Shown: one piece after another, positions 25,529 to 49,808 of the stretch
Numbering within the stretch: the first letter of the stretch is position 1
Layout: the number at the start of each line of letters is the position of its first letter
IMG/VR virus record: IMGVR_UViG_3300044640_001495
Location: 124,001-188,000 of that record
Strand: one strand, 5' to 3'
Length of the DNA stretch: 64,000 bases
Notes under the pieces: model-generated
Database searches by the model: none
What the model was told of the DNA's origin: nothing
What the model saw: only the letters and a program-made list of their open reading frames with translations
Made by a program: the position numbers and the translations under genes

Positions 25529-25532
25529 CATT

Positions 25533-28896: not shown

Positions 28897-29086
28897 AATT
28901 CTGGTTCCGTGGAATAAAGAACAAACTGGGTTTTGGTGGAATGAAACTTGTGCTATGGTATTGGAACACTTTGGCCTGCCAGGCGATCGATATACCAGTC
29001 ATCCAGAGACCGATCAGATGACATTTAAATTTCATAACGAACACGATGCTATGATGTGCAAAATATTGTTAAGCGACAGAATATGA
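28889..29086 (+). CDS. hypothetical protein
   Basis: 65-aa coupled ORF. Confidence 0.7.
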   Translation: MHEILVPWNKEQTGFWWNETCAMVLEHFGLPGDRYTSHPETDQMTFKFHNEHDAMMCKILLSDRI

Positions 29087-29280
29087 TCAAATACATTGTT
29101 GGATTTATTGTTGCTTGCGTCCTTTGGATAATTGTACTTTCTCGAGTAGAGCTTCCCGAATATCGAGTGTACGATTGTAGTATGGCTGAATGGCATCCTG
29201 ATATTCCCATCGATGTAAAAGAAGAATGTCGTAAGCGTAGATATCAAGATTGGAAACATAAAAACGACAATGCCATTTAA
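29083..29280 (+). CDS. small membrane-anchored protein
   Basis: N-terminal TM then YDC..EWHP...C. Confidence 0.7.
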   Translation: MIKYIVGFIVACVLWIIVLSRVELPEYRVYDCSMAEWHPDIPIDVKEECRKRRYQDWKHKNDNAI

Positions 29281-29287
29281 TTAGGAG

Positions 29288-29476
29288 TTGAAATTGAAAA
29301 ATTGGACAGTTACCGTTGAAGAAGATCTCGACACAGGTGATCTTGTTTTGCCGTTACCTCAAGATATGCTCAATCTACAAGGTTGGGTAGAAGGCGACAC
29401 ATTAGAATGGATAGATCAAAAAGATGGTAGTTGGCAACTCAAAAAGGTTGACACAACTAGTGAAAAGAGTGTATAA
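29288..29476 (+). CDS. AbrB/MazE-like swapped-hairpin protein
   Basis: GDLVLPLPQ...GW.EGDTLEW; TTG start with AGGAG SD. Confidence 0.6.
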   Translation: MKLKNWTVTVEEDLDTGDLVLPLPQDMLNLQGWVEGDTLEWIDQKDGSWQLKKVDTTSEKSV

Positions 29477-29477
29477 T
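29448..29477 (+). promoter_or_regulatory. sigma70-type promoter for queE
   Basis: TTGACA-N18-TATAAT; ATG 5 nt after -10. Confidence 0.8.
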
Positions 29478-29482
29478 ATACT

Positions 29483-30346
29483 ATGAGCAAAATTAAAATC
29501 GCAGAGCTGTTTTACAGCATACAAGGTGAAGGTAGATACATGGGTGTGCCTAGTGTATTCTTACGCACATTCGGGTGTAACTTTAAATGTGCCGGCTTCG
29601 GTATGCCTCGTGGGGAAGTAAGTCACGAAGCTACTGACATTGCGGCTACACATAAAATGATTACGCCTTTTACAAAGTATGAAGATTTACCATTAGTTAG
29701 TACTGGATGTGACAGCTACGCTAGTTGGCATCCTGACTTTAAAGAGTTGTCGCCTATGCTTACTAGCGAAGCAATCGTAGAACGAATTATGGAAATTATT
29801 CCGTTTGAAGAATGGCGTGATGAACATCTGGTTATCACAGGTGGCGAACCTTTGCTAGGTTGGCAACGTGCTTATCCTGATTTGTTGAATCATCCAAAGA
29901 TGGGCAAGTTAAAAGAAATTACTTTTGAAACAAATGGTACTCAGAAACTAACTCCAGAGTTTAAACAGTATCTAAAACAATGGGCACAGAATCCGCCATT
30001 TGCCTCTAGAGAAATTACATTCTCAGTAAGTGCTAAACTTCCTTGCAGTGGCGAAAAGTGGGAAGAAGCTATCCTTCCAGAAGTCGTTTGCGAGTACGAA
30101 GAAGTTGGTACAGCATATTTGAAGTTTGTTATTGCTACAGAACAAGACTTTGCTGATGCCGAGTGTGCGATTGCCGCATATCGTAAAGTAGGCTTTACAG
30201 GTCATGTATATCTAATGCCGGTAGGCGGCGTGGAAAGTGTCTACGCATTAAACAATAAGAATGTAGCATTGCTAGCAATGAAAAACGGACTACGTTATAG
30301 TGACCGTTTACAAGTGCCGCTGTTTAAAAATGAGTGGGGTACCTAA
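29483..30346 (+). CDS. queE: 7-carboxy-7-deazaguanine synthase (radical SAM)
   Basis: ELFYSIQGEG..G.PSVFLRTFGC, CDS, VITGGEP, ETNG, LMP, RLQV. Confidence 0.9.
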   Translation: MSKIKIAELFYSIQGEGRYMGVPSVFLRTFGCNFKCAGFGMPRGEVSHEATDIAATHKMITPFTKYEDLPLVSTGCDSYASWHPDFKELSPMLTSEAIVERIMEIIPFEEWRDEHLVITGGEPLLGWQRAYPDLLNHPKMGKLKEITFETNGTQKLTPEFKQYLKQWAQNPPFASREITFSVSAKLPCSGEKWEEAILPEVVCEYEEVGTAYLKFVIATEQDFADAECAIAAYRKVGFTGHVYLMPVGGVESVYALNNKNVALLAMKNGLRYSDRLQVPLFKNEWGT

Positions 30347-30786
30347 TGAAGAAGTTTATAGAAAAACTGTTTGGCATTGACAAGATCAAGGCCGAAACTG
30401 CGGCAGCAGTACAACTGGCCGAGGCCTCAACAAAAATTGCCAAAGATGCAGTCGAGGCTGCGGAACGTGCTGTAGAAGCAGAAGAAACTGCTAAACTAAG
30501 TCCAAAAGATCGTGCTACCAAACTAAAGGAACCTTGGGTAGGTGTACTTAACACTCACGTTAATAAAGATAATATCCGCAATGGCTTTTTTGAGCTTGAC
30601 TGGAACGAGCAGTTTGTGTTAAAATTAAAGCAAGAAGGATATGGTTTCGACGGCGATAAAGACGAAGAGATTGTAGATCGTTGGTTCCGTGAACTATGTG
30701 CTAATGTAGTAGTTGACGGAGATTTTGGCGGCGCTGTAAACACTGGCGTTATTGATATTAATGAAGTTCGAAAGAAGAATCTATGA
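30346..30786 (+). CDS. hypothetical protein
   Basis: ATG 30346 (TAATG coupling). Confidence 0.8.
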   Translation: MKKFIEKLFGIDKIKAETAAAVQLAEASTKIAKDAVEAAERAVEAEETAKLSPKDRATKLKEPWVGVLNTHVNKDNIRNGFFELDWNEQFVLKLKQEGYGFDGDKDEEIVDRWFRELCANVVVDGDFGGAVNTGVIDINEVRKKNL

Positions 30787-31769
30787 CATATATTTTAGTT
30801 GATACTGCAAACACCTTTTTTCGTGCAAGACACGTTATCAACGGTGACGCTGATATCAAACTAGGCATGGCATTTCATATCACACTTAACAGTATTAAGA
30901 AAGCATGGCAAGACTTTGATGGGAAACATGTGGTATTCTTCTTAGAGGGGCGCAGCTGGCGTAAAGATTTTTACAAACCCTACAAGGCACAACGCACTGC
31001 GGCTCGGGCGGCACATACAGAGCGAGAAGCAGAAGAAGAACGTGTATTTTGGGAAGCCTTTGACACATTTAAAGATTTTGTTACAGAAAAAACTAACTGC
31101 ACAGTACTACAACATCCACGCCTAGAAGCTGATGATTTAATTGCAGGTTGGATACAAAGTCATCCTAGCGATAATCATGTGATCATTTCAACAGATACAG
31201 ATTTCGTACAACTAATTTCACCTAATGTAAAACAATATAATGGCGTCACAGAAACCACAATCACGCACGAAGGCTACTTTGATAAAAAAAATAAGCCCAT
31301 CATTGATAAAAAAACTCAAGAAGTCAAAGCGGCTCCGGATCCACAATGGCTACTTTTTGAAAAGTGCATGCGAGGCGATACCTCAGACAATGTATTCTCT
31401 GCATATCCGGGAGTACGTGAAAAAGGCACAAAGAATAAGGTTGGTCTCCGTGAAGCCTACGGTGATAGAGACTCAAAAGGCTATGCGTGGAACAATCTCA
31501 TGCTTCAACGCTGGTCCGACCACAACGGTCAAGAACATCGTGTGCTAGATGACTACGAACGCAATCGTCAATTGATTGATCTGGCTGCACAACCAGCCGA
31601 GATTAAACAAATTATGGTTGACACAATTACAACAGCAACGCAGGCAAATAAAAACGTCAGCCAAGTTGGTATTAGATTAATGAAATTTTGCAATCTGTAT
31701 GATCTTAAAAAGATTGCCGATCAGGCACAAGCCTATGCTGAGCCACTGAATGCGAGATATATACTATGA
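30783..31769 (+). CDS. rnh: T4 RNase H-like 5'-3' exonuclease
   Basis: LVDTAN..FR, EADDLIA, STDTDF.QL, GDTSDNV. Confidence 0.9.
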   Translation: MTYILVDTANTFFRARHVINGDADIKLGMAFHITLNSIKKAWQDFDGKHVVFFLEGRSWRKDFYKPYKAQRTAARAAHTEREAEEERVFWEAFDTFKDFVTEKTNCTVLQHPRLEADDLIAGWIQSHPSDNHVIISTDTDFVQLISPNVKQYNGVTETTITHEGYFDKKNKPIIDKKTQEVKAAPDPQWLLFEKCMRGDTSDNVFSAYPGVREKGTKNKVGLREAYGDRDSKGYAWNNLMLQRWSDHNGQEHRVLDDYERNRQLIDLAAQPAEIKQIMVDTITTATQANKNVSQVGIRLMKFCNLYDLKKIADQAQAYAEPLNARYIL

Positions 31770-34785: not shown

Positions 34786-36120
34786 ATGAGTGAACACGAA
34801 AAATTTCAAAAAGTTATTCCAATCCTAAATGCTGTTAGTCCTAGTTTTTGTTTAGCCAAATGGTATCAACTAACATTATATCTCCAAAACGGTTTTAACC
34901 ATAGTTGCCACCATCCATCACCTCATAAGATTCCATTAGACGAGTTAGAGCAAAATCACAAGGCTCTACATAATACTAATTTTAAAAAAGAACAAATGCA
35001 AAAAATGCTCGATGGCGTTAGACCCGCCGAGTGTGACTATTGTTGGACCGCTGAAGATAACGGGCATGTAAGTGATAGAAGTTATAAAAGTGCAACATCT
35101 TGGGCCTATCCTCACATTGGCGAAGTTGTTAAAAATAAAACAGCTGATGTTGAACCTACATACGTTGAAATTAGTTTTAGCAATGTGTGTAATTTTAAAT
35201 GCGCTTATTGTAGTCCAGATCTTAGTAGTCAATGGTATGAAGAAATAGACAAGCACGGTGGGTATCCTACTAGTCAAAACTTTAATGGGTTTGATTGGTT
35301 TAAACAAGTTGGAAAGATGCCTATCAAGCATAGCGATCACAATCCTTATGTCGATGCGTTTTGGAAATGGTGGCCGGAACTTTATCCTAAATTAAACACG
35401 CTAAGACTAACAGGCGGGGAACCACTGTTGAGCAAAGATGTCTGGCGTATGTTAGATGCTATAGAAGCTGATCCCAAACCAGAGTTTTGCTTTGCTATTA
35501 ACACTAACTTAGGAATCCCAGACGAGTTAATTAATCGTATGATTATAAAGCTCAATAGTATTTCTAGTAAAATTAAAGAAGTACAAATCTTTACCAGCGG
35601 AGAAGCAGTTGGCGCTCCTGCTGAATATATTAGATATGGATTAGATTATTCAGCATGGACTAAAAACTTAGAAAAAGTTTTAAATAATACCAATAACATT
35701 GTTGCTGTAATGACTACTGTTAATTTAACTAGCATTACAACCTATTGTAGTTTTATACGATACTTGTTAGACTTGCGTAAGCATTATAATAAGAATGCCA
35801 CATTTAATAAAGTTCAGTTTATGACTAACTTTTTACGGTATCCAGAATTTCTGTCATTACCTATTTTAGACTCTGCTAGCAAACAAAGATTTACAAAAGA
35901 AGTAGCAAAATTAATTTTAGAAAGACCTGACTTATCAGAAAGTGAAATAGATCAGTTGCGTCGTATGATTGACTATATGAACAGCACTGATATCAAGGAA
36001 TTACAATTAAGAAAAGACTTTGCATCTTTTATCACTGAATATGATATTAGACGGGGAACCAACTTTAATAAAACATTCCCTGAACTTACAGAATTTTATC
36101 AACTATGTCAACAAATGTAA
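34786..36120 (+). CDS. radical SAM protein with N-terminal twitch/SPASM-like Cys cluster
   Basis: FCLAKW...SCHH, CDYC; CNFKCAYC; TGGEP. Confidence 0.9.
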   Translation: MSEHEKFQKVIPILNAVSPSFCLAKWYQLTLYLQNGFNHSCHHPSPHKIPLDELEQNHKALHNTNFKKEQMQKMLDGVRPAECDYCWTAEDNGHVSDRSYKSATSWAYPHIGEVVKNKTADVEPTYVEISFSNVCNFKCAYCSPDLSSQWYEEIDKHGGYPTSQNFNGFDWFKQVGKMPIKHSDHNPYVDAFWKWWPELYPKLNTLRLTGGEPLLSKDVWRMLDAIEADPKPEFCFAINTNLGIPDELINRMIIKLNSISSKIKEVQIFTSGEAVGAPAEYIRYGLDYSAWTKNLEKVLNNTNNIVAVMTTVNLTSITTYCSFIRYLLDLRKHYNKNATFNKVQFMTNFLRYPEFLSLPILDSASKQRFTKEVAKLILERPDLSESEIDQLRRMIDYMNSTDIKELQLRKDFASFITEYDIRRGTNFNKTFPELTEFYQLCQQM

Positions 36121-37433
36121 AACGCACAATAGAAATTATTAACGAAATAAGTCCTAGCTTTTGTGCCGCAAAGTGGTACAATGCTACTATATGGTTAGGC
36201 AACGGACGAACAGCCAGCTGTCATTTGCCACCTGCTCATACTATACCCATAGCTGAAATCAAACGAAACCCGTCTGCTCTACACAATACCGTCTTTAAGA
36301 AGGACCGCCGATTAGAAATGCTAATAGGTGAGCGATGTGACGAGTGCGCTTATTGCTGGACTGTTGAGGATAATGCAGCACCTGATGTATATAGTGATCG
36401 AGTTTATAAGACTAGGATTTATGAAGAAGAAGAAATACTTCAGCTGGCTAAATTAGATCCTGGATCAGATGTTGACCCAAAAACTTTAGAGATCAGTTTT
36501 GATAATTTATGTAATTTAAGTTGTAGTTATTGTAATGCAGAGTTCAGTACTACTTGGGCTAGTGATATTAAGGTTAATGGTCCGTACATTGAATTAAAAA
36601 CATCAGGTGGTGGTGCGTTTCAAAATGCCGGGGAACATGCGTTACCTTACGGGATTAAAAATGAAAACAATCCCTACATCGAAGCGTTCTTTACATGGTT
36701 TCATGCTAGCCTTAAAAATAATTTACAAGAACTAAGAATCACCGGGGGTGAGCCTACTCGTAGTCCATCATTTTGGAAATTGTTAGACGAATGCGAAGGT
36801 ACAAATTTTGATTTTGCTGTTAACAGTAATCTTATAATGGATCAAGTAAAGTTAAATCAACTTATTAGTGCTAGTAAAAAGTTTAAGAAATTTGATCTAT
36901 ATACCAGCGGTGAAGGCTACGGGGCCCACGGAGAGTTTATTCGTCATGGGTTAGACTATACATTATGGCGTAACAACTTAATACAATTTGCCAAAGAAGG
37001 TCAATATAATATGATACATGTTATGATGACTATTAGTGCTCTAAGCATTTGGACCGTAACAGAGTTTATGACAGATATGTTAGAGCTACGTAAACAATTT
37101 GGTGGCCATCAGTTCCATATGAGTCTTAATTTAGTACGCTTTCCTAGTTTTCAAAACTTAAACGTATTACCTGAACACTTAAAACAAACACAAGCGGCCA
37201 AGATTGAAACTTGGCTAAGTAGTGTTGTTGGGCTAAGTCCTGCCGAAGCTAATCAAATAGAGAGAATAGCTGTGTATCTTCGAAACGTTGATCGTAGTCA
37301 AGAAGATACCGACAGCCAAAACAATAAGGTGCATGATTTAAAAAGTTTTACACAACAATATGCTGATAGAAAAAATATCACATTAGCTAGGGTATTCCCA
37401 ACAGAATTTATAGAATGGTTTAACACAATATGA
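36105..37433 (+). CDS. radical SAM protein with N-terminal twitch/SPASM-like Cys cluster
   Basis: FCAAKW...SCH, CAYC; CNLSCSYC; TGGEP; paralog of 34786. Confidence 0.9.
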   Translation: MSTNVKRTIEIINEISPSFCAAKWYNATIWLGNGRTASCHLPPAHTIPIAEIKRNPSALHNTVFKKDRRLEMLIGERCDECAYCWTVEDNAAPDVYSDRVYKTRIYEEEEILQLAKLDPGSDVDPKTLEISFDNLCNLSCSYCNAEFSTTWASDIKVNGPYIELKTSGGGAFQNAGEHALPYGIKNENNPYIEAFFTWFHASLKNNLQELRITGGEPTRSPSFWKLLDECEGTNFDFAVNSNLIMDQVKLNQLISASKKFKKFDLYTSGEGYGAHGEFIRHGLDYTLWRNNLIQFAKEGQYNMIHVMMTISALSIWTVTEFMTDMLELRKQFGGHQFHMSLNLVRFPSFQNLNVLPEHLKQTQAAKIETWLSSVVGLSPAEANQIERIAVYLRNVDRSQEDTDSQNNKVHDLKSFTQQYADRKNITLARVFPTEFIEWFNTI

Positions 37434-38644
37434 GCGAAGACAAATTTTGTATAGTGCCATGGATACATCTTAATACAGAACCTAACGGTCGTGTTAAGCC
37501 TTGTTGTGCGTATCTTGGACAAGATTTTGGAAACTTAAAAGATACTACACTAGAAGAAATATGGAATAACGAACATACTAAATCTATGCGTAGAAGCTTT
37601 TTAGAAAATAAAATTCCAGAAGGATGTCTAACCTGTACTAAAAAAGAAGACAGCGGTGGTGTAAGCTATAGAATGGCGGTTACTGAAAGATTCAGCCATC
37701 ATATTGAAAAAGCTAAAAGTAACACATTGCCCGACGGTACTTATGAAACGTTTGAAATAATTTTTTGGGATTTTAGATTCAGCAATATCTGTAACTTTAA
37801 ATGTCGTATGTGCGGACATGGTAGTAGTAGTTCTTGGTTTGACGACTTTACACCTGAAGAAAAGAAAACTAAGGTAAAGTTCCTTGACAGTGCGTATTAT
37901 GGAACTAATTTAATGAAATATGTTGATCAGTTTATTGACGATGTTGAAGAAATCTATTTTGCTGGCGGTGAACCATTACTTATGGCCGAACACTATCAGA
38001 TACTAGATAAGCTAATTGCCAAAGAACGATATGATGTATTTTTGCGTTACAACACCAATATGAGTACTATCAAGTATAAAGATTACGACCTGGTTGATAT
38101 CTGGAAACGATTCAAAGATGTTAGAATTTTTGCAAGTATTGACGGCATTGATGAAAATGCAGAGTACAGTAGATCTGGAACTGACTGGCCTAGAGTAGAA
38201 GAAAACTTAGTCCGTTTATCACAATCAAATGTTGATTATGTAGTATCAACTACTATAAACATTCTCACAGTTTTTAATTTTACTAAACTAGTTGATCGAC
38301 TAATAGAATTAAAAATGTCGACTAGGAAAGTACTAGTAAGTCACGTTAACTGGCCTAAGCACTATATGTCGTCAATTTTGCCCGAAGAGCTAAAAGATCA
38401 AATACGTTTACAACTGGATCAACATTTAGAAAAAATAACGCTGGCCGTAACCGAAGAAGAAAGTCGATGGTTAGCTAACCTATACAACGAAATTAAATTT
38501 TATTTAATCTCAACAACATCAACAGAAGAAACCACGACCTTACAACAGCGATTTAAAAGAGATACTATTAAGTTAGACCGTATTAGAAAAGAAGATATAA
38601 GAACGGCTGTACCAGAATTAGCCGAATGGTTTGATACATTATGA
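37430..38644 (+). CDS. radical SAM protein with N-terminal twitch/SPASM-like Cys cluster
   Basis: FCIVPWIH...PCC, CLTC; CNFKCRMC; AGGEP. Confidence 0.9.
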   Translation: MSEDKFCIVPWIHLNTEPNGRVKPCCAYLGQDFGNLKDTTLEEIWNNEHTKSMRRSFLENKIPEGCLTCTKKEDSGGVSYRMAVTERFSHHIEKAKSNTLPDGTYETFEIIFWDFRFSNICNFKCRMCGHGSSSSWFDDFTPEEKKTKVKFLDSAYYGTNLMKYVDQFIDDVEEIYFAGGEPLLMAEHYQILDKLIAKERYDVFLRYNTNMSTIKYKDYDLVDIWKRFKDVRIFASIDGIDENAEYSRSGTDWPRVEENLVRLSQSNVDYVVSTTINILTVFNFTKLVDRLIELKMSTRKVLVSHVNWPKHYMSSILPEELKDQIRLQLDQHLEKITLAVTEEESRWLANLYNEIKFYLISTTSTEETTTLQQRFKRDTIKLDRIRKEDIRTAVPELAEWFDTL

Positions 38645-39849
38645 GTGATAAATTTATTTGTGATTTTCCCTGGATTCATTTAAGTGTGTTTCCACAGGGC
38701 AACTGTACTGTATGCTGTGTGGCTAAACATTCGGGTAAGGGCAACGGACATAGTTGGAACAGAGTCAGTGAGGATAAAACTAAAACTATAACAGTTATGA
38801 ATAGTTCTATACCAGAGATTGTTAACTGCGATAATTATAAAACTATTAGACTAGATATGTTAGCAGGCAAGGTACCGACTGCATGTGAGGGGTGCCATCA
38901 AATTGAACAGGCTGGTGGAAAAAGTAAACGACAGCAAGAAACTACTCGAAATTTAGATCATGCGGCATTGACCTCAGTTGACGGTTCTATCAAGACAGAT
39001 CTTCGTCACATTGAATTACGATTAGGAAATTTTTGTAATTTAAAATGTCGAAGCTGTAACGCAGACTCTAGTACAAGCTGGATTCAAGATTACTATAAAT
39101 TAAAAGATACAGTCAAGTTAGCTAGTGGTTATCATTGGATTAAAAGTAATCCTGATTTTAGTTTTGATTGGGTAGACGATGAATCTTTTTACAACAGATT
39201 AACAGAATTTGCTCCTAATCTAGAACAAATACATATAAGTGGTGGCGAACCATTCCTTGTACCTACTCACTTTAAACTATTAGAAAAATTAGTGCGAGAT
39301 GGTAAAACAGATATCGCTATTCACTACCATACAAATTTAAATTATAAATGGGATAAAATTACTCCAGCATTGGATCTATTGACTAAATTTAAAGAAGTAC
39401 ATATTAGTTTCAGCATTGATGATGTTGGAGAGCGCAACACTTATATTAGAAGTTTAAGCGATTGGGATTTAACCATTAGTAACTTAAAATTATTTTTAAA
39501 TAATTACAAATTCATTTATCGTGTAACTCAAACTGTCAGCGTCTATAATTTTATGTATGTTGAAGAATTAGAAAGGTATTTAGCCAACAATAAAATACGT
39601 ATTAGAGTAGGTTTAAATCATGTTCAGAGCCCAGACTACTTATCAGCTAATATATTATCTAAACAAATGCGACAAGATAAAATTAATTCACTATACGGTA
39701 TTATTGATCGACGCAATTGGGAAGATCTTTATGGCCATTACTATACTCCAAAAGACAACGGACAGTGGGAATACTTTAAATATTTTACAGAAAAAATTGA
39801 TACTGTGCGTAACGAAGATTTAAATAGTATTTTTCCAAAACTAGCATGA
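38641..39849 (+). CDS. radical SAM protein with N-terminal twitch/SPASM-like Cys cluster
   Basis: ICDFPWIH...VCC, CEGC; CNLKCRSC; SGGEP. Confidence 0.9.
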   Translation: MSDKFICDFPWIHLSVFPQGNCTVCCVAKHSGKGNGHSWNRVSEDKTKTITVMNSSIPEIVNCDNYKTIRLDMLAGKVPTACEGCHQIEQAGGKSKRQQETTRNLDHAALTSVDGSIKTDLRHIELRLGNFCNLKCRSCNADSSTSWIQDYYKLKDTVKLASGYHWIKSNPDFSFDWVDDESFYNRLTEFAPNLEQIHISGGEPFLVPTHFKLLEKLVRDGKTDIAIHYHTNLNYKWDKITPALDLLTKFKEVHISFSIDDVGERNTYIRSLSDWDLTISNLKLFLNNYKFIYRVTQTVSVYNFMYVEELERYLANNKIRIRVGLNHVQSPDYLSANILSKQMRQDKINSLYGIIDRRNWEDLYGHYYTPKDNGQWEYFKYFTEKIDTVRNEDLNSIFPKLA

Positions 39850-40646
39850 AATTTATTTTTTTAAAATCGGGCGACTATTTAGAATTAGAACCCAACAACA
39901 CTCCTATAGCATCTGTTTGGTTTGAAAGCATTTTTTCTAAAAAAATGAATATGAGTTATTTTGCTAGAGATACTTCGTTTATAACTCGTTCTAACGAGAC
40001 TATTAATAATCTAAATACTGCAATTGATATAGTTAATAAGTTTGCTGTAGAAAAAAATCTACCTCAAATCATGTTTGATAAAATTGTTGGTATTGATCAA
40101 CAATGGCTCAATGCGTCACATAAAAAATGGGTATTGCACACTGACAGATTAAAGAATATAGTTAATGGCGACGATACAAAACAAAACTATCCCGGCTTTG
40201 TGAAATCTTGGCAAAATATCAATTTATACATTCATTCTTTAGAATATTATTATTCTGTTTATTTTACTAATACAAAAGGAGCATATTTAGAAAATATTGA
40301 TATTAAAATACAGCCGGAAGATTGCGAATACTCACAACACGATCTAATTTTAAGATTTGACGATTTAGGAAAACATCAGTATGACCAATGGATTACTGGA
40401 AGCGCAGTTGATGAAGAAACTAGCAATTACAAAACAATTTCGGCTAGATTTGAATATGCATTTAATCCGCAATTAAATAAAGGAATTCTTCCTAATCCAG
40501 CATATATAGAGTGGTGTAATCAAAATAATTTACAAGTTATGCCACCGTGGATTATTTTAGGAAACTTTAAAAAGAATAAATGGGAAATTAAACAACTCAT
40601 ACATCAAAATTTATCTCGAGGATTAGAAGTAGGATTTGAATTATGA
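39846..40646 (+). CDS. hypothetical protein
   Basis: 266-aa ORF coupled to rSAM array. Confidence 0.8.
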   Translation: MKFIFLKSGDYLELEPNNTPIASVWFESIFSKKMNMSYFARDTSFITRSNETINNLNTAIDIVNKFAVEKNLPQIMFDKIVGIDQQWLNASHKKWVLHTDRLKNIVNGDDTKQNYPGFVKSWQNINLYIHSLEYYYSVYFTNTKGAYLENIDIKIQPEDCEYSQHDLILRFDDLGKHQYDQWITGSAVDEETSNYKTISARFEYAFNPQLNKGILPNPAYIEWCNQNNLQVMPPWIILGNFKKNKWEIKQLIHQNLSRGLEVGFEL

Positions 40647-41506
40647 AAATTTATGTAAATGGAGATAGTTTTACTGCTGGCGACGGATTGTCTGATCCAG
40701 AAGTTTTTCCAGATTTGTATCCAGGGCATCATTCTTGCGACATAGAATTTGACGTAGCATGGTGTAATAAAAGGCATGCAATGCTAGATAAAAATCTTGA
40801 TTTACACAATCACTGGCAAATTAATAATAAGAAATATGTGTGGTCTACAATATTAGGAGAGCTAGTTAATACTATGTTAGTTAATGACAGCGTTACTGTA
40901 GTTAATGGTGCCATTGGCGGATCATGTATGACAGGCATATCAACTAGAACTATTGCCTATCTTGAATCATTAAGAAGTCGAGCAGACTTGCCAGATCATG
41001 TTTTCATAGGCTTAACAAGCATTGGAAGATTAGGTTGGTATCACGAAGATACACAAGATATTGGTAAAATTTTTAATTGGGTTAAATCGACTATTCCAGG
41101 ATTTCATTATCGAGGACATGAAAGTAAACATAAAAAATTGTTTGAAACTATTTGGACAACACTCAGTGATGAAGAACTGCTTATTAATTATCTAAAAGAA
41201 TGTTTACAAATTAAAAATTATGTCAAGAGAAGAATTGGACGAGATCCTATTTTCTTAAACACTGTGGGTGAATTTTGGCAATACAAAGAAATAGTCAATA
41301 ACTCTAAAAATCAATGGCTTCGAATGCTTTGGTTTGATTTATTAGAATTTGATAAGATTAACAATCGATGGTTCAATAAAGGAGCGTTTGAACAAATGAC
41401 TGCGTGTGGACACGTACTTCCGCCTGGTCATGCTGAATATGCTAGAGATTTAGCAAGAGAACATTTTGGATGGGGTAAAAATCCGGATGATAGGGATGCC
41501 AATTAA
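40643..41506 (+). CDS. SGNH/GDSL-like protein
   Basis: YVNGDSFTAG, NGAIGG, CGH..P.GH. Confidence 0.65.
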   Translation: MKIYVNGDSFTAGDGLSDPEVFPDLYPGHHSCDIEFDVAWCNKRHAMLDKNLDLHNHWQINNKKYVWSTILGELVNTMLVNDSVTVVNGAIGGSCMTGISTRTIAYLESLRSRADLPDHVFIGLTSIGRLGWYHEDTQDIGKIFNWVKSTIPGFHYRGHESKHKKLFETIWTTLSDEELLINYLKECLQIKNYVKRRIGRDPIFLNTVGEFWQYKEIVNNSKNQWLRMLWFDLLEFDKINNRWFNKGAFEQMTACGHVLPPGHAEYARDLAREHFGWGKNPDDRDAN

Positions 41507-41523: not shown

Positions 41524-43509
41524 TTATTTTTTTACTAAGGATTGAAATGTATTAAATTGCTTTTGCAACCATTCAAAATCGTTAATTTTTCTTAACTGAT
41601 CGGCATCAGCAATATTCAATAATCCGTACTGTTTTCCAGCTCGAGCTCCTGCTATACTATATTCTCCATAAAGTTTATCAGATCCAATACTACACCAAGT
41701 AATTAATCGATCTTCAGTTTCTTCTTGATATCCAGAATCAACAGGACGGCTGGCTAATTTTACACACTCTCTAAACGCAGATTTCCAAGTATTAAACGGA
41801 TCGGTATTAAAAACTGTTAGATTACTAACTTCTTTTATAACTTTAAATTTTTTGCTTATTGCCATAGTCATGTCAACACTAGACATGTCCATATTAATAG
41901 TTAAGTTTTTAGGCAATAATTTAACACCGCCATAGCCGTATGTTAATCCGTTGATAGGATTTTTGCTTAACCAAACATGAACAATATCTGTATCGTGTTT
42001 AGGTAGTAGTAGGTCAAATTGAAAATCATCTTCTATTATTGCATCACCGTCTACTACCCAAAACATTGGAGTTGTTGCTAATTTTGCGGCTGCAATGTGT
42101 GCTTGGTGAATACCTTTTACGCCGTGTACACGTTTGGCTCTCGGAAATTGATCAATTAATTTAGCAAAATTTTCATCTGCATTAGGTTCGTTATAAGATA
42201 TAAACACAATATCGTATAATTTTAATTTACTTGCCACAAGGTCATATTCTTTTTTTTCAATCAAATATCTATATTCAACTTCTCTTGCAGAAATAAGTCT
42301 TTTCTTCGATAATAACATTATACCGTTGTACTTAATTTCTTCAACATCAATATTTTTAAAGACGTGATTTATACTAAGCTCATACTTATTTTGGTATGGA
42401 AATTGAAGATCAAATTTAAAATCTGGCGCAGGTTCAACTTCCGGAGGAATCGCCCAAAACATATCTGTATCAGCTGTGTTAAGAGCATGTTCGTAATCAC
42501 TAAACGTATCGATTACAAATTTGTCGTACGGTTTATATTTGCTGGCCACTAGATCGTGTTCTTTTTTATCTATAAAAAATCTATGTTCAATCTCTTTCTT
42601 AGATACTGGCTTATTTGTAGAAAATAACACAACACCGTTAACGAACGATTCCTGATCGTTAGATATATTTTTAAACACGTGATTTTCGTTTCGATCATAG
42701 GAATTATGGTGACTAAAATAAGTTTCAAAAATTTGATCATTAATTATTTCAATATTTGGCCATACTCCCCAAAACATTGTTAAAGGTGAATTTTCTAATG
42801 CAGATCGATATTCTTCATAATTGTTAATAATAAAAATAGGATATGTTTTAGGTTTACTAGCTACTATATCAATTTCTTTTTTGTTAACATAAAATCTATG
42901 ATCAAATTCTTTTTTACTAATTTCTTTGTATTTTGAAAACAACGCTATTCCGTCAAAAAATTCTCCGTTTTTAAATACATGAGTTATGTTTCGATGAAAT
43001 GCATCGTATGTTGGAACATAATAATCAAAAAGAAAATTTTCGGCTACAACAACATCATCCCATACTGCCCAGAACATCGCTGTTGAAGATTGCTCTTTTG
43101 CATTTAAATAATCGTTGTATGTTTTTATATTATGAATTTCAAATTTCTTAGGAGTTGATGCAATTACATCCATCTCCTTTTTGTTCATAAAAAATCTATG
43201 ATCAAATTCTTTTTGTGTAGTATTGGCTGTTTTAGGAAATAGATTTATTCCGTCAAATGTTGTTCCGTTTAACCAAACGTGGGTATATTCTTCGTCCCAC
43301 TTAGATACTCTGTATTCAAAATTAAAATCGTCAGCTACAACAACATCATCCCATACGACCCAAAAGAATTTTGTAAATGCTTTCTTTTTAATGTCATCGA
43401 ACGATTTTACATTATCAATTTTTTGAGAAGATGGAAATTTAGAACGAAATTGTTTCCAATTTTGTTCATCAATAATATTTTTACTTACATAAAAAATATC
43501 ATAGACCAT
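41524..43509 (-). CDS. multi-repeat glycosyltransferase-like protein (four partial repeats plus C-terminal GT-A domain)
   Basis: C-terminal DIVFISY..E, AH..AA, WVVDGD (DxD), GYGGVKL; repeated MFW/HVFKN/HRF/KKE units. Confidence 0.75.
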   Translation of the reverse strand: MVYDIFYVSKNIIDEQNWKQFRSKFPSSQKIDNVKSFDDIKKKAFTKFFWVVWDDVVVADDFNFEYRVSKWDEEYTHVWLNGTTFDGINLFPKTANTTQKEFDHRFFMNKKEMDVIASTPKKFEIHNIKTYNDYLNAKEQSSTAMFWAVWDDVVVAENFLFDYYVPTYDAFHRNITHVFKNGEFFDGIALFSKYKEISKKEFDHRFYVNKKEIDIVASKPKTYPIFIINNYEEYRSALENSPLTMFWGVWPNIEIINDQIFETYFSHHNSYDRNENHVFKNISNDQESFVNGVVLFSTNKPVSKKEIEHRFFIDKKEHDLVASKYKPYDKFVIDTFSDYEHALNTADTDMFWAIPPEVEPAPDFKFDLQFPYQNKYELSINHVFKNIDVEEIKYNGIMLLSKKRLISAREVEYRYLIEKKEYDLVASKLKLYDIVFISYNEPNADENFAKLIDQFPRAKRVHGVKGIHQAHIAAAKLATTPMFWVVDGDAIIEDDFQFDLLLPKHDTDIVHVWLSKNPINGLTYGYGGVKLLPKNLTINMDMSSVDMTMAISKKFKVIKEVSNLTVFNTDPFNTWKSAFRECVKLASRPVDSGYQEETEDRLITWCSIGSDKLYGEYSIAGARAGKQYGLLNIADADQLRKINDFEWLQKQFNTFQSLVKK

Positions 43510-44410
43510 CAGTGGTCCTCATATATGTATTTGTTAATTTAATAGTTTCTTCGTACAAATCTAAAGTATATTTGCTCTGTTGACTATCTAGATAGGGATA
43601 ATCAAAACCTAGTTCTAATTTAATTTTTTCACCTAATGATTTAATTTCATCATCTAGACCATCACCGCCTACTTCTTCAAATGGGCGGCCATATTGATTC
43701 CAAATACCTTTAAGGATTTCAAAGTCTCGAACCTCTACATAATTCCAGTCGGTACAGTTTGCTAACCAAGTGCCTAATCTAGCACCATATATAGCATAAA
43801 GTCCGTTTTCTTCATGAGCACCAACTGTTGACCACATACGTAATCTATGCAAATTGTGCCACCAAACACGTTCGCTAATCTCTTGTGGTGACACTTTAAC
43901 TCCATCGAGTAAGGTCATTTTAACGCCTTCACGAAATCCTGCTCTCCATGCTTGAAAAGGACTTCCGGTAATATCAGTATCACTATAACATTCTTTAAAT
44001 TGACGATACCCATCTTCCCAACAAAAGTCTACTTGAGCGCGATCGCTTTCACTAGCTTCATGGGTTTTCATATTGAGAATAAAATCTCGTTTCCATATTT
44101 TAAGCCCGCCATTACCGTAGAGTAAGCCATTAAGTTTGTTTTTTCCTAGCCAACTATATACCTGTATCTTAGGATTACTTGTATCGATGTCTAGATTAAA
44201 AAATTTAGGATTAACTATATTATCAGCGTCAACCGTAATAACCCATTCAGTTTCACTTAACTCAGCTGCTGCCTTATGTGCAGCATCACTACCCTTCACC
44301 CCGTGAACTCGTTTAGCCCAAGGAAGTTTATTACATAAATCAGCATAATGCTTATCTGCATTGGGTTCGTCATAACTTAAAAATACAATGTCAAGTTCTA
44401 TTGTTTTCAT
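43499..44410 (-). CDS. GT-A fold glycosyltransferase
   Basis: DIVFLSYDEP, VHGVKG..AH, TVDAD (DxD), YGNGGLK. Confidence 0.78.
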   Translation of the reverse strand: MKTIELDIVFLSYDEPNADKHYADLCNKLPWAKRVHGVKGSDAAHKAAAELSETEWVITVDADNIVNPKFFNLDIDTSNPKIQVYSWLGKNKLNGLLYGNGGLKIWKRDFILNMKTHEASESDRAQVDFCWEDGYRQFKECYSDTDITGSPFQAWRAGFREGVKMTLLDGVKVSPQEISERVWWHNLHRLRMWSTVGAHEENGLYAIYGARLGTWLANCTDWNYVEVRDFEILKGIWNQYGRPFEEVGGDGLDDEIKSLGEKIKLELGFDYPYLDSQQSKYTLDLYEETIKLTNTYMRTTDGL

Positions 44411-45000
44411 ATTGTTTCAAATATATATTTGTCAAAAATTCGCCTTGTATAAACACTAAATCTATTTGGCAAATCTAATGTAAATAATTTTGTATTTTCT
44501 GTAATGTCGCCTGCCCTAATGCTTAACATATGAAGGAGGACATTGGGGTCGTTGTAATCAGTTACTAAAAAAATCATTTCAGTTGCACCGTCCCAAATAA
44601 TATTATTTGAGTATTTGTCGCTCATTGAAAATATTAATGTACTATTTTTTGTATCATGTGAAATTGTGATATCAGGATCTTGCATATTTGACCACTTTTT
44701 ATCTATTATTCTATGCAAGATGTCATCGATCTTTATTAGACTATGGGTGGAAAATTTGTTTAATTTAACTAATTTCTTAGTTGGTAAATCAACCCTATAA
44801 GAAAATAGATTTTCCTCTCCTGTAGAAACTGCTGTGGCAATTTCTTCATCAATTTTTATATTATTTGTATTATCAAATACCGCATGAGAAGGATATATTC
44901 CAATTAAAGATCCGTCATCTTTAAATGTTGCATAGTATTCGACGGTTTGATTGACTGGTAATTTAATCCACTCGTCAAAGTCCATTAATTCTTGTTCCAT
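44407..45000 (-). CDS. hypothetical protein
   Basis: 197 aa, coupled inside GT operon. Confidence 0.8.
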   Translation of the reverse strand: MEQELMDFDEWIKLPVNQTVEYYATFKDDGSLIGIYPSHAVFDNTNNIKIDEEIATAVSTGEENLFSYRVDLPTKKLVKLNKFSTHSLIKIDDILHRIIDKKWSNMQDPDITISHDTKNSTLIFSMSDKYSNNIIWDGATEMIFLVTDYNDPNVLLHMLSIRAGDITENTKLFTLDLPNRFSVYTRRIFDKYIFETI

Positions 45001-45827
45001 GCAATCTCCTCTAACATACTAACTATTTCGTCATTAACTAGATCTTTTTCAACATAATGCACAATATTATATTGCTGATAATTTCCAATTTTTAAATTTC
45101 CCTGTGTATTAAAATAAAAACCTGCATGTTCAGTGACCCTTTCGGCAGTCCAGGGCCAATTTTGAATCATCGGTTTCATATGTACTATATTAGGAAACGC
45201 TAAATCATAACTTATAATATCACTTATATCTAAAATCTTTGCGCTTAGAGCGAATGCTTCATCTGTTCCAACAACTTTTGGTTTATGTTTAGTAAGATAT
45301 AAATTACTAAACTCTAAAGGGTTTTTTATAATATATCTACCTAAATTGAAAAATTCTGTTGCAAGCTCGGATCCTTGTTTAAAAAAAGTAAACATGGAAT
45401 ATAAATTAGGAAGATTGTTTTTTGTAAATGTTTTTCTATAAAAATCATTTATGATTGTTTCACCTCTATAGGTTAAGGCCTTTGGAGGAATGTATAATTC
45501 ACAATTTTCAATAAAGTAATCAATCCAATGGCTATGATCCCTAAGAAAAAGCATGTCTGCATCAAGGCATACTGTATTTTCAAAAGGAGATAGTTGATCC
45601 ATCCAGCTACGGCCATCCCAATGTGTTTCTTTATCCCAGGTAATTACATGATCAAAAACCCAAGGACTTTTTAAATTATTAACTAGCTGAGGTTTATCGA
45701 TTACTAAAGCAACTTTATTGTATCCTGGTTTCTGAGTATTTTTAATACTTAATGCAAGAGCATAGGCCAGTTTAAGATAGTCTATATTATCATTCGAAGC
45801 AACAAAAATTAAGTAACCAAAGTTCAT
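44985..45827 (-). CDS. GT8-like nucleotide-diphospho-sugar transferase
   Basis: A..LALSIK, TVCLDADMLF (DxD), TDEAF, HMK. Confidence 0.65.
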   Translation of the reverse strand: MNFGYLIFVASNDNIDYLKLAYALALSIKNTQKPGYNKVALVIDKPQLVNNLKSPWVFDHVITWDKETHWDGRSWMDQLSPFENTVCLDADMLFLRDHSHWIDYFIENCELYIPPKALTYRGETIINDFYRKTFTKNNLPNLYSMFTFFKQGSELATEFFNLGRYIIKNPLEFSNLYLTKHKPKVVGTDEAFALSAKILDISDIISYDLAFPNIVHMKPMIQNWPWTAERVTEHAGFYFNTQGNLKIGNYQQYNIVHYVEKDLVNDEIVSMLEEIAWNKN

Positions 45828-46684
45828 ATTAACTCCAGTAGTTTTTCTTTATTTCTAATAATACTTTGTTTGTTCATAACGTGAACATCAGAACCTTGTG
45901 TAGTTGCAGCCCAAAAATCTCCGCAATTAAGTGGTTTGTCAATTAGGAACGTTAGCCGATCTCCATTTACATCATGTAAAATATCTTTATCAAATACTGT
46001 TAGAATAGGAGGTAATGTATAAACAAACTCAGTTTCAAACCCGTTCATGATATGTTTGGCAACGCTAAATGAAATGTCGTTTCGATATTGCCTTGGGTCA
46101 AATCTAAATAGGTCGGCATAATATCTATAATTGTCTTTAATATAATCAACTAATTTAAAAAAGAATCTACTTTCTTCGTTTTTAGTAAACATTACAGTAG
46201 TGGCCCAAAACATATGAACTCCGGTTTCACTTACACGTTGATCTAATATACCGCTGCGGTCACCTGTTATATCATTCATAGAATGTCCTAACATCACACT
46301 ACTATCTGTGTTCCAGTACTCATTTAGTTTGTTAGAAAAGATTAAATAATCACTGTCAACTAACAGGGTTTGATCGTAAGGACTTAAATCCCAAACTGAA
46401 AATCTATTTGAATTTACAAAAGGAATTGTCTGGCTGTAAAAACCATCATGAAGTTTTCTTGTATTTTTTGTTCTAGGCTTTTCAATTTCAATAATCTTAT
46501 CAAAAATAGATTCGGCTCTAGCATACATCTCTGATTCTTTTAACCAAGCAATTGTCCATTTGTCTGTTATTAAACTAACTGGTAATCCCAAATGTTTTTT
46601 TGCTAGGCCGCCAGAAATTATACCCATTACACCATAATCTACTTCTGGGCCATTATGAGCAAAAATTAATACGCCTTTAGTCAT
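45824..46684 (-). CDS. GT8-like nucleotide-diphospho-sugar transferase
   Basis: SPYDQTLLVDSDY (DxD), RNDISF, HVMNK; paralogous to 44985. Confidence 0.65.
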   Translation of the reverse strand: MTKGVLIFAHNGPEVDYGVMGIISGGLAKKHLGLPVSLITDKWTIAWLKESEMYARAESIFDKIIEIEKPRTKNTRKLHDGFYSQTIPFVNSNRFSVWDLSPYDQTLLVDSDYLIFSNKLNEYWNTDSSVMLGHSMNDITGDRSGILDQRVSETGVHMFWATTVMFTKNEESRFFFKLVDYIKDNYRYYADLFRFDPRQYRNDISFSVAKHIMNGFETEFVYTLPPILTVFDKDILHDVNGDRLTFLIDKPLNCGDFWAATTQGSDVHVMNKQSIIRNKEKLLELI

Positions 46685-47031
46685 ATATTCAATAATTTTT
46701 CTACGGTTCTGCTAGATTTAATTTTTTCGTATTCTTCGTGATATTCGTAGGTGGCAGTAAAATACCTATCTAGAATTTCATCTCGAAATATTTGTAGGTC
46801 TGGAATTAAAATTGGGTTTTCATTTTGATCAATTAAGGGAACATTTTCTGTTCTGTCTTGATCAATTAGCATTTGAACAAAAACTAATAGTGTTCTATCA
46901 ATCTTAAATATACCGCCGGAGTGGCCGTAAGTCAATTTACCCTCAATTTTTTCTTTAAGGGTTTTTCTTTGAATTGCTAGGGTTTGTCTATAATTAGAAA
47001 AATCTAAGGCAGCTTTTAGACGGTCGTCCAT
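46681..47031 (-). CDS. hypothetical protein (weakly DUF4376/fibre-assembly-like)
   Basis: 116 aa; GGIFKID...LID.N.NPI pattern; GGAG SD. Confidence 0.7.
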   Translation of the reverse strand: MDDRLKAALDFSNYRQTLAIQRKTLKEKIEGKLTYGHSGGIFKIDRTLLVFVQMLIDQDRTENVPLIDQNENPILIPDLQIFRDEILDRYFTATYEYHEEYEKIKSSRTVEKLLNI

Positions 47032-47056
47032 GGTATCTCCTATAAAACACGCACAT

Positions 47057-47064
47057 TATTTATA
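47057..47064 (-). promoter_or_regulatory. perfect T4 late promoter TATAAATA
   Basis: Reverse complement of TATTTATA, intergenic, upstream of GT operon. Confidence 0.75.
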
Positions 47065-47088
47065 TGGCGTCTTATAGAGGATTAAAAT

Positions 47089-49764: not shown

Positions 49765-49786
49765 TGATCAACTCCGTTGTAACTAT

Positions 49787-49794: not shown

Positions 49795-49808
49795 GTAAAT
49801 ACACCCAT

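Follow-up and report, generated by a model that had tools for sequence, protein, structure and literature searches.

A phage array of radical SAM enzymes beside glycosyltransferase-like genes

Radical SAM (rSAM) enzymes of the twitch type carry one auxiliary [4Fe-4S] cluster, and several of them, such as BtrN, AprD4, NeoN/HygY, BlsE and SpeY, act on sugars. In these enzymes the twitch domain follows the radical SAM core, and they occur singly in antibiotic pathways, not as arrays in viruses. The SPASM-domain peptide maturases (anSME, PqqE, SkfB, sactisynthases) bind two auxiliary clusters through seven to eight conserved Cys. On the viral side, soluble GT-A enzymes encoded next to structural genes glycosylate virions, as described for chlorovirus PBCV-1 (A64R and partners) and for mycobacteriophage capsids and tail tubes (Freeman et al. 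2023), and these systems are not known to contain radical SAM enzymes. Finally, many rSAM genes were noted before in marine T4-like phages (Nishimura 2017; Zaragoza-Solas 2020). The hypervariable host-recognition cluster of pelagimyophages harbours tail fibres, glycosyltransferases and “radical SAM cassettes” (PMC7029224), and a 183-kb T4-like environmental genome carries 12 rSAM genes and an A-type Fe-S carrier (PMC5332604). Those papers only count or mention the genes; family identity, paralog structure, conserved order, array-terminal protein and linkage to glycosyltransferases were not worked out there, and we found no assigned function in the literature we could search.

Here, we analysed a window of 64,000 nucleotides of a large uncultured phage (positions 124,001 to 188,000 of IMG/VR record IMGVR_UViG_3300044640_001495). 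A first-pass annotation, made from the sequence alone, had pointed to four overlapping twitch/SPASM rSAM genes in two paralog pairs, followed by an unknown ORF and an SGNH protein, without precursor peptide and converging on a glycosyltransferase operon. We could confirm this observation. Six genes, all on the + strand and overlapping by 4-16 nt, encode rSAM r1 (34786-36120, 444 aa), r2 (36105-37433, 442 aa), r3 (37430-38644, 404 aa), r4 (38641-39849, 402 aa), ORF5 (39846-40646, 266 aa) and the SGNH-like ORF6 (40643-41506, 287 aa). The two pairs are real, since r1 and r2 share 36% identity, r3 and r4 share 27%, and identities across pairs are 23-25%. The motifs reported for each pair are also present (SFCLAKW/SFCAAKW and FCIVPWIH/ICDFPWIH).

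All four enzymes match the NCBIfam model NF033640, “twitch domain-containing radical SAM protein” (N_Twi_rSAM), end to end (model positions 1-2 to 394-398 of 398), with 344.5, 272.9, 382.7 and 326.3 bits for r1 to r4, respectively, against a cut-off of 170. This family is only a bioinformatic definition: we found no paper that names it or assigns a reaction, no characterised member, and, in anything we could search, no description under that name of phage arrays of 4-8 paralogs, of their fixed order or of their companion genes. The accessory domain lies at residues ~1-90, before the CX3CX2C motif found at 121-142. Among the four proteins, CX3CX2C (C121/C125/C128 in r3), the GGEP motif (G179-G180-E181-P182 in r3) and four N-terminal Cys are invariant. 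Within each subfamily clade (52-113 sequences), the Cys triad is 100% conserved and four (r1/r2 types) or five (r3/r4 types) N-terminal Cys are conserved at 97-100%, while the extra Cys of r2 and r4 are found in only 4-16% of clade members. In r1, C22/C41/C83/C86 and C135/C139/C142 are 100% conserved and C441 is 91% conserved. These proteins therefore fit the twitch subclass, with one predicted auxiliary cluster, rather than the two-cluster SPASM subclass, although Pfam SPASM (PF13186) matches residues 7-70 of r3 (E 5e-12) and 7-86 of r4; Pfam Radical_SAM matches residues 117-280 of r3. Their domain order is also reversed relative to the SPASM peptide maturases.

The interpretation given in the first-pass annotation, a multi-step radical pathway making unusual sugars or modifying virion proteins by analogy with BtrN, is only partly supported. 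While the C-x17/18-C...C-x2-C ligand pattern and the carbohydrate gene context of related loci recall the sugar-modifying twitch enzymes, the domain order is reversed, no such enzyme appears among the NCBIfam or PDB hits, and no sequence relationship could be detected beyond the superfamily. The BtrN analogy is thus a lead and not evidence, and nothing in our data shows whether the substrate is a sugar or a virion protein. On the other hand, a multi-enzyme set of ancient, distinct paralogs rather than recent duplicates is supported, as is its position facing genes that are glycosyltransferase-like by fold or profile. In agreement with the first-pass annotation, we found no characterised pathway of this shape in the literature. 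Nonetheless, the arrangement is not rare.

Indeed, the cassette is one diverged copy of a module that recurs in most of the 81 related, non-redundant IMG/VR loci that we compared, in which the median is five N-terminal-twitch rSAM paralogs in a row. With the companion protein families labelled c1, c2 and so on, the usual order is tail fibre, c5 (Thr-rich), c4, two c2 (GT8-like), the small protein c7, c1 (GT-A), the rSAM array, c8 (array-terminal), c6 (SGNH-like) and carbamoyltransferase; the latter and nucleotide-sugar enzymes are frequent additions. In our window, the array is inverted and converges on this string. The four paralogs fall in separate old clades that keep their array position. 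The r1 clade comprises 70 sequences, 59 of them first in their array; the r2 clade comprises 54 sequences (support 0.997), 35 of them at position 2; r3 defines the core subfamily; and the clade of r4, which is last in the array, is richer in bacterial members. Minimal versions exist in close relatives at the same junction: loci L042 and L046 carry only the r3 type, and L027, L037, L067, L076 and L081 carry the r1 type plus the r3 type. This is what would be expected of a stepwise tailoring pathway.

ORF5 gave no Pfam, NCBIfam or PHROG hit. Its AF2 model (pLDDT 86) has no PDB match (best E 0.28), but five uncharacterised phage proteins in BFVD match it at E 2e-5 to 5e-4, and its family counts 146 representative clusters in 1.84 billion proteins. 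A profile of that family recovers 33 c8 proteins, nearly all placed directly after the last rSAM, and hhalign links ORF5 to c8 with 61% probability (E 8e-5), in line with ORF5 being a short member of c8. For ORF6, the SGNH assignment is supported only indirectly. The protein has no direct Pfam or PDB hit and no D-x-x-H block V, but it harbours a GDSFT block at residues 7-11, with G7 and S9 invariant, and conserved N88, G93, H257 and H263. hhalign links it to c6 at 99.1% probability (E 8e-19), the c6 profile in turn hits the GDSL-family structures 4rsh and 4rw0 at E 6e-5, and the nearest ESM Atlas clusters carry DUF6071/Lipase_GDSL. ORF6 might thus be an SGNH/GDSL-like hydrolase or acyltransferase.

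The string of genes on the minus strand gave no Pfam, PHROG or NCBIfam hit, and its glycosyltransferase character is supported by fold for the c1 proteins and only weakly by profile for the c2 proteins. The c1 protein (43499-44410, 303 aa), from a family found in 66 of 81 viral loci and normally encoded directly upstream of the rSAM array, has an AF2 model with a pLDDT of 90.2 and 40 Foldseek PDB hits at E<=1e-3. These are overwhelmingly GT-A glycosyltransferases, with a few nucleotidyltransferases of the same fold, and the best is the PBCV-1 capsid-glycosylating enzyme A64R (2p6w, E 8e-6); TM-scores are low (0.24-0.39) because only the N-terminal half of c1 aligns. Of its DxD motif, D61 is nearly invariant and D63 invariant. 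c1 is thus predicted to adopt the GT-A fold with a DxD motif, its activity being inferred. The adjacent 661-aa protein (41524-43509, minus strand) contains four degenerate N-terminal repeats of a half GT-A unit that lost the DxD, plus one intact c1-type GT-A domain at residues 431-655: the c1 profile hits residues 431-655 at iE 5e-48 and residues 3-87 at 2e-5. The repeat motif FW[VAG][VI] starts at 49, 146, 351 and 483, with DGD only in the last, and a further copy, FWGVWPNIEIINDQIF, was seen by eye between 146 and 351. The two c2 paralogs (44985-46684, minus strand; 280 and 286 aa) belong to a family found in 54 of 81 viral loci, usually as a tandem pair. In a profile search against the PDB, c2 hit only glycogenin-1 and -2 (GT8), at E 0.002-0.9 over profile positions 8-102, glycogenin-1 being hit at E 0.002 over the N-terminal half through the LDAD motif. 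This motif contains an invariant Asp, and invariant His and Lys lie near the C terminus. This evidence is weak, and c2 proteins remain GT8-like candidates.

Altogether, the reading that we tentatively favour is a cytoplasmic radical tailoring of an unusual glycan, possibly placed on host-recognition proteins. In this view, each rSAM would cleave SAM at the CX3CX2C cluster in the infected cell, and the resulting 5'-deoxyadenosyl radical would abstract a hydrogen from a defined sugar carbon, either on a nucleotide sugar or on a growing glycan. The N-terminal auxiliary [4Fe-4S] cluster would then take up or return the electron, giving oxidation, epimerisation, dehydration or C-C rearrangement depending on the subfamily. 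SGNH-type esterases or acyltransferases would add or remove acyl groups, carbamoyl, methyl and amino groups would be added as well in other phages, and soluble GT-A and GT8-like glycosyltransferases would place the product on an acceptor, most plausibly the Thr-rich c5 protein or the tail fibres encoded next door. The array-terminal ORF5/c8 protein is proposed to work with these enzymes. Our analysis establishes family membership, conservation of the cluster ligands, array structure and order, cassette mobility, synteny with GT-like and sugar-pathway genes and absence of membrane components, while cluster binding, glycosyltransferase activity, the sugar substrate, the individual reactions and the acceptor are all inferred.

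Several features of related loci are consistent with this proposal. Arrays in related phages are flanked by GT7N/7C+LamG glycosyltransferases, three NDP-sugar epimerase/dehydratases, a dTDP-sugar isomerase, a TPP enzyme, a cytidylyltransferase, a carbamoyltransferase, UDP-Glc/GDP-Man dehydrogenase, a B12-rSAM, an APS-kinase-like protein and a DegT aminotransferase. In our window, the array and the GT string share one low-GC island (32-36% against about 40% elsewhere). The six-gene unit is found intact in two different genomic contexts, which indicates a mobile cassette. However, in the second context (loci L001, L166 and L167), which also holds an Fe-S_biosyn gene, no recognisable GT lies within 10 kb of the cassette. 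Also against this proposal, the array in our window is on the strand of the replication and nucleotide genes, and its upstream region lacks the ATAAATA element seen before the GT string and a fibre gene.

Direct modification of a phage protein (tail fibre, c5, c4/c7 or another virion protein) is the main rival, although we consider it rather doubtful. The rSAMs would install crosslinks, epimerised residues or oxidised side chains, as most SPASM/twitch enzymes do on peptides, and glycosylation would be a separate or subsequent step. Besides the SPASM match, most NCBIfam cross-hits are peptide maturases, and the best PDB sequence hit of the rSAM profile is the peptide maturase SkfB, though weakly (E 8e-4). 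In Hyphomicrobiales genomes, single homologues sit with PqqD (a peptide-recognition element), an HPr-kinase-like protein, NTP_transf_5 and an ABC exporter, a RiPP-like context, and GT2 is also encoded with bacterial single-copy homologues. Moreover, the conserved small proteins c4 and c7 and the Thr-rich c5 sit just upstream of the arrays. On the other hand, the PqqD-family cluster is confined to bacterial genome loci and was found in no viral locus, and neither the window's rSAMs nor ORF5 and ORF6 show an RRE/PqqD match. No precursor-like gene is evident in the window: the gaps flanking the cassette are only 122 nt and 17 nt, no Cys-rich or repeat-type candidate was found, and the only small Cys-rich ORF in 33-48 kb is antisense inside another gene. 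Other substrate proteins cannot be excluded, but the companions that recur with the arrays are carbohydrate enzymes.

It was also proposed, for glycosyltransferases in the host-recognition cluster of pelagimyophages, that the host envelope is remodelled during infection. Zaragoza-Solas et al. 2020 (PMC7029224) place GT8-type glycosyltransferases and the “radical SAM cassettes” in that cluster and favour O-chain modification. The weakly GT8-like c2 and the hypervariability of the island between close relatives would be coherent with a module building or altering an O-chain or capsule, for example to block superinfection. We consider this unlikely. None of the window's module proteins and almost none of the companion-family members has a predicted membrane helix, and none has two or more, so there is no flippase, polymerase or GT-C; no lipid-carrier transferase or ligase is found among the companion families either. 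In addition, the module is co-directional with, and directly follows, the tail-fibre genes in most loci.

A role in nucleotide or DNA hypermodification, in which the rSAMs would act on nucleotides or on sugar-modified bases of phage DNA and the glycosyltransferases would decorate DNA, seems the least likely. Phage glycosyltransferases that hypermodify DNA are known (Pyle et al. 2024, cited in PMC12619734). In the window, the array lies on the strand, and at the end, of a block with GTP cyclohydrolase I, a QueE-like rSAM, a phosphoribosyltransferase, HIT, HhH-GPD and an exonuclease, and there are weak NCBIfam cross-hits to viperin-type enzymes. However, the canonical position of the module is in the fibre operon and not among replication genes, the viperin cross-hits are far below cut-off (17-26 bits against 180), and no hydroxymethylase or TET-type gene was seen next to the arrays.

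The remaining genes of the minus-strand string extend to the tail fibres. The c30 protein (44407-45000, 197 aa) occupies by synteny the slot of c7, with which it aligns weakly at its N terminus, and gave no family hit. The conserved small protein c4 (46681-47031, 116 aa) is present in 45 of 81 loci, and the window's only TATAAATA lies in the gap just upstream of it, at 47057-47064 on the minus strand. The c5 protein (47089-48000, 303 aa), which lies between the tail fibres and the GT string, belongs to a phage-only, Thr/Gly/Ala/Ser-rich family present in 42 of 81 loci, with 17% Thr overall and 22% in the last 40 residues. It has virus-only Atlas clusters and no PDB sequence hit, and we infer that it is a candidate virion protein and glycan acceptor. 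Four tail-fibre paralogs follow (48010-55575, minus strand; 584, 605, 612 and 690 aa), assigned to PHROG tail-fibre families and similar, by eye, over their N-terminal ~90 residues. A second SGNH-like gene (28321-28896, + strand, 191 aa) lies 6 kb upstream of the array and clusters with c6, which is present in 36 of 81 viral loci and has the consensus GCSFT...G.GN...HP....H. Finally, the DNA polymerase of this phage is closest to those of Phosso, Atu_ph07 and RaK2-like jumbo phages.

Between 34786 and 41506, six plus-strand ORFs of 444, 442, 404, 402, 266 and 287 aa overlap each other by 4-16 nt. The first four (r1 to r4) hit Pfam Radical_SAM, and the third and fourth also carry a Pfam SPASM match at their extreme N terminus. 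All four match NCBIfam NF033640 (“twitch domain-containing radical SAM protein”, N_Twi_rSAM) from end to end, with scores of 273-383 bits against a cut-off of 170, while every other radical SAM model scores far below its own cut-off. The array of four enzymes followed by two further proteins described in the first-pass annotation is therefore confirmed, and the two paralog pairs that it proposed are real: r1 and r2 share 36% identity, r3 and r4 27%, and identity across pairs is 23-25%. An alignment of the four enzymes shows that C7, C26, C66 and C69 (r3 numbering; a C-x18-C...C-x2-C pattern), the CX3CX2C motif at 121-128 and the GGEP motif are invariant. Within each subfamily clade (52-113 sequences), exactly these Cys are 97-100% conserved, plus an adjacent fifth Cys in the r3 and r4 types, while the extra Cys of r2 and r4 are not conserved. 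Each enzyme thus most likely holds the SAM cluster and one auxiliary cluster, as inferred from sequence, which makes it a twitch and not a SPASM enzyme, with a domain order that is the reverse of that of BtrN and of the peptide maturases. In addition, a C-terminal Cys (C441 in r1, 34786-36120) is conserved in 91% of position-1 enzymes and is absent from the other three types. Some radical SAM epimerases use such a Cys as a hydrogen donor, but for r1 this is a lead only.

The window belongs to a large phage. The region carries a T4-type DNA polymerase, whose best matches are Sinorhizobium phage Phosso (50%) and Agrobacterium phage Atu_ph07 (46%), with RaK2-like jumbo phages at 43%. It also holds four tail-fibre paralogs and a virion protein of more than 2,500 aa on the minus strand. 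Over its full length, r3 is 100% identical to a match in IMG/VR contig IMGVR_UViG_3300042869_000672 (187,679 bp), and in a 21-kb locus of that contig the four rSAMs, ORF5 and ORF6 (the 266-aa and 287-aa proteins) score identically to those of the window. By contrast, no match was found at the DNA level when the cassette and window positions 1-25000 were searched against 50,697 phage records. At the protein level, cultured phages yielded only distant homologues (22-26% identity) in KVP40-like Vibrio phages and RsoM2USA, with uninformative annotated neighbourhoods. The array and the facing minus-strand genes together form a low-GC island of 32-36% over 34-47 kb, against about 40% elsewhere.

We found that the array is one instance of a common module. 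The family is large, since r3 has more than 4,700 relatives at E<=1e-10 among the candidates scored, and a scan of IMG/VR gave at least 568 confirmed relatives. ORFs were called in the 80 best loci and searched with a profile of the four window enzymes. The 81 non-redundant viral loci (the window included) hold a median of five N-twitch rSAMs within 10 kb, and up to seven. As these loci were chosen as the best matches to r3, they are biased toward r3-containing arrays. Clustering of all neighbouring ORFs (simple ORF calls, grouped by single-linkage BLAST) revealed a conserved and usually co-directional order of companion families: tail fibre, c5 (~317 aa), c4 (~105 aa), two c2 (~265 aa each), c7 (~115 aa), c1 (~310 aa), the rSAM array, c8 (~350 aa), one or two copies of c6, and carbamoyltransferase. 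Copies of family c3, extra radical SAM genes and sugar-nucleotide enzymes are interspersed. Within the 81 loci, c1 occurs in 66, c2 in 54, c3 in 53, c4 in 45, c5 in 42, c6 in 36, c8 in 32 and carbamoyltransferase in 29. These are lower bounds, because many contigs end inside the module and only 10-kb flanks were considered.

The window fits this order closely. Its minus-strand genes from 55575 to 41524 are exactly the string of four fibres, c5, c4, c2, c2, c30 (the window's protein in the slot of c7), c1 and c1. The array sits where it should, directly after c1, but it is inverted, so that the two halves converge with 17 nt between their stop codons. Direct Pfam, NCBIfam and PHROG scans of ORF5, ORF6 and the minus-strand ORFs of 41524-48000 returned nothing. 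Nonetheless, ORF6 is a c6 homologue, as hhalign gives 99.1% probability and E 8e-19. ORF5 looked lineage-restricted at first, with only 30 close homologues, but a profile search of 1.84 billion representatives found 146 clusters. A profile built from those recovers 33 c8 proteins in our loci, with E down to 6e-11, and nearly every one is the gene immediately after the last rSAM. The direct hhalign comparison with c8 gave 61% probability (E 8e-5), and a fold search with the ORF5 model found no significant match in the PDB. The six genes are therefore the canonical unit composed of the rSAM array, an array-terminal protein and an SGNH-like protein, the SGNH assignment being indirect and resting on the c6 homology.

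This six-gene unit is found intact, and in the same order, in two genomic settings. One is the setting of the window (loci L168 and L169). In the other (loci L001, L166 and L167), it follows DNA ligase, PRA-PH and Bax1-I and is itself followed, within about 7 kb, by PTPS (QueD-like), UvdE, Fe-superoxide dismutase and an A-type Fe-S carrier gene (PF01521), and then by a 3,500-aa protein. The unit therefore moves as a cassette. The PTPS, UvdE, superoxide dismutase and Fe-S carrier genes of the second setting are possible support functions for oxygen-sensitive Fe-S enzymes in aerobic hosts. Close relatives at the window's own junction carry only an r3-type gene (locus L042) or r1-type plus r3-type genes (locus L037).

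The paralogs are old and ordered. In a maximum-likelihood tree of 475 family members, r1 falls in a clade of 70 sequences, of which 59 are first in their array, and r2 in a clade of 54 (support 0.997), of which 35 are second. r3 falls in a clade dominated by third positions and single-copy genes, and r4 in a clade richer in bacterial members. This is the signature of a multi-step pathway with distinct enzymes and not of recent amplification. Arrays of N-twitch rSAMs are also carried by genome contigs of the predatory Bdellovibrionota, of up to 0.9 Mb (loci L136, L156, L088 and L090). L136 has c1-type GT-A and c8-type genes, and L156 a B12-rSAM and a QueC-like gene, but the genes flanking these chromosomal arrays gave no clear pathway. 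They might be cellular versions of the module or prophages. The bacterial loci of our set include phage contigs binned into MAGs (for example L091 and L092).

Concerning the companions, c1 had no sequence-level annotation, and profile searches of the PDB with c1, c3 and c5 gave nothing useful, while ORF6 gave only noise. However, an AlphaFold2 model of c1 from a 24-sequence alignment (pLDDT 90.2) gives 40 PDB matches at E<=1e-3, which are overwhelmingly GT-A glycosyltransferases with a few nucleotidyltransferases of the same fold. The best is the chlorovirus PBCV-1 enzyme that glycosylates its major capsid protein (2p6w, E 8e-6). Only the N-terminal half aligns, so that TM-scores are 0.24-0.39, but a DxD motif is conserved. 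The 661-aa ORF at 41524-43509 (minus strand) ends in an intact c1 domain (iE 5e-48) and begins with four degenerate copies of the half-domain that have lost DxD. It could be a pseudo-enzyme scaffold or an acceptor-binding array. The c2 profile hits only glycogenin (GT8), at E 0.002 and through the LDAD motif, which is suggestive but weak, whereas c6 matches GDSL-family structures at E 6e-5. In related loci, the annotated genes include three GT7N/7C+LamG glycosyltransferases, three NDP-sugar epimerase/dehydratases, a dTDP-sugar isomerase, a TPP enzyme and a cytidylyltransferase. Others carry a NodU-type carbamoyltransferase, UDP-Glc/GDP-Man dehydrogenase, a B12-binding rSAM and an APS-kinase-like protein, or a DegT aminotransferase. 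In the ESM Atlas, c1 and c5 returned only unnamed virus clusters. c5 is a virus-only, Thr-rich protein with 17% Thr overall and 22% in the last 40 residues. Its 0.70-score link to a “modification target Cys-rich repeat” family was rejected, since this score is at chance level and c5 has a single Cys. Finally, none of the window's module proteins has a predicted transmembrane helix; only a few members of the companion families have one, and none has two or more.

The recurrent company of glycosyltransferase-like and sugar-tailoring genes points to a soluble pathway of glycan building and tailoring, expressed with or beside the fibre genes. The absence of any export or lipid-carrier machinery and the position next to host-recognition genes point in the same direction. 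On this reading, which we favour over the others but hold only tentatively, the N-twitch enzymes would each perform a radical step on a sugar. That the acceptor is a virion protein such as c5 or a fibre is less certain again. While family membership, conserved cysteines, the order and mobility of the array and its synteny come directly from our analysis, the sugar substrate, the reactions, the acceptor and the expression of the module are inferred from sequence and predicted structure alone. The interpretation of the first-pass annotation, a multi-step radical pathway making unusual sugars or modifying virion proteins, is thus only partly supported.

The main rival, which we consider less likely, is direct protein modification, since SPASM and twitch enzymes are mostly peptide maturases. 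In Hyphomicrobiales genomes, single homologues lie with PqqD, an HPr-kinase-like protein, NTP_transf_5, GT2 and an ABC exporter. A PDB search with the rSAM profile gave only weak hits, to the peptide maturase SkfB and to viperin. On the other hand, no PqqD-type or precursor-like gene was found to accompany the phage arrays. Remodelling of the host O-chain is the explanation offered in the literature for the glycosyltransferases of this island (PMC7029224), but it fits poorly with the lack of membrane components and appears improbable here.

Nucleotide or DNA modification is the least likely of these possibilities. It is suggested only by the local strand context of the window and is contradicted by the canonical position of the arrays. 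A nucleotide/7-deazaguanine-type block lies on the plus strand at 24273-31769, with GTP cyclohydrolase I (24273-25016), an HhH-GPD glycosylase-like gene (25748-26167), a phosphoribosyltransferase (26587-27132), HIT (27129-27509), a QueE-like radical SAM (29483-30346) and a 5′-3′ exonuclease (30783-31769). The same order appears in a 144-kb relative, and no DpdA/TGT-like gene was seen in the ORFs scanned. A link between the arrays and the 7-deazaguanine pathway was considered and rejected, because the arrays occur mostly without those genes.

The existence of multiple radical SAM genes in such phages was already known. Nishimura et al. 2017 recorded a 183-kb T4-like marine viral genome with 12 radical SAM genes and Fe-S assembly genes (PMC5332604), and Zaragoza-Solas et al. 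2020 mentioned “radical SAM cassettes” and glycosyltransferases in the host-recognition cluster of pelagimyophages (PMC7029224). In the passages that we consulted, neither study identified the family, the paralog structure, the array-terminal protein or the link to GT-A proteins. Literature searches for the family name and for phage rSAM or glycan pathways found no functional study, and no paper naming NF033640 or assigning it a reaction.

Radical SAM enzymology has very few carbohydrate-modifying members, and none with this domain order is known to us. A bolder possibility, which we regard as unlikely although it is not excluded, is that N-terminal-twitch enzymes are a new class of carbohydrate-tailoring radical enzymes. 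In this view, phages would use ordered arrays of four to eight of them, with a dedicated array-terminal protein, as an assembly line for a hyper-modified glycan on their own host-recognition fibres, and cassette gain and loss would diversify this glycan between closely related phages. Ordered arrays are found beside glycosyltransferases and tail fibres in most of the 81 uncultured-phage contigs compared. If the products are virion glycans, phage host-recognition structures could carry chemically elaborate sugars, which would bear on receptor binding, on evasion of defence or grazing, and on how hypervariable “host recognition” islands evolve. The arrays would also be a source of several new radical reactions, and the four subfamilies together with the minimal one-gene and two-gene versions make the question tractable.

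As to regulation, terminator and promoter scans gave counts that were not above those of the shuffled controls. The T4-type late promoter element TATAAATA occurs once in the window, against 5.95 expected by chance, and is therefore not usable as evidence of timing. Its single occurrence, at 47057-47064 on the minus strand, lies in the 57-nt gap before c4 and the GT string, and a similar GATAAATAATAG precedes a fibre gene, upstream of 49764, while the gap before r1 instead has TATAATAAG. This may mean that the inverted array is timed differently from the GT string, although the motif count is not above chance. A near-perfect TTGACA-17-TATAAT lies just upstream of the QueE-like gene.

The four consecutive tail-fibre paralogs (48010-55575, minus strand) have visibly similar N-terminal ~90 residues but different distal parts, and one carries a Peptidase_G2 intramolecular-chaperone-type C terminus. 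This is consistent with a branched or multi-specificity fibre set, as in RaK2-like phages. Furthermore, at 4500-8184 on the plus strand, the phage encodes a full DnaJ (J domain plus C-terminal domain) and a 777-aa Lon-like ATP-dependent protease.
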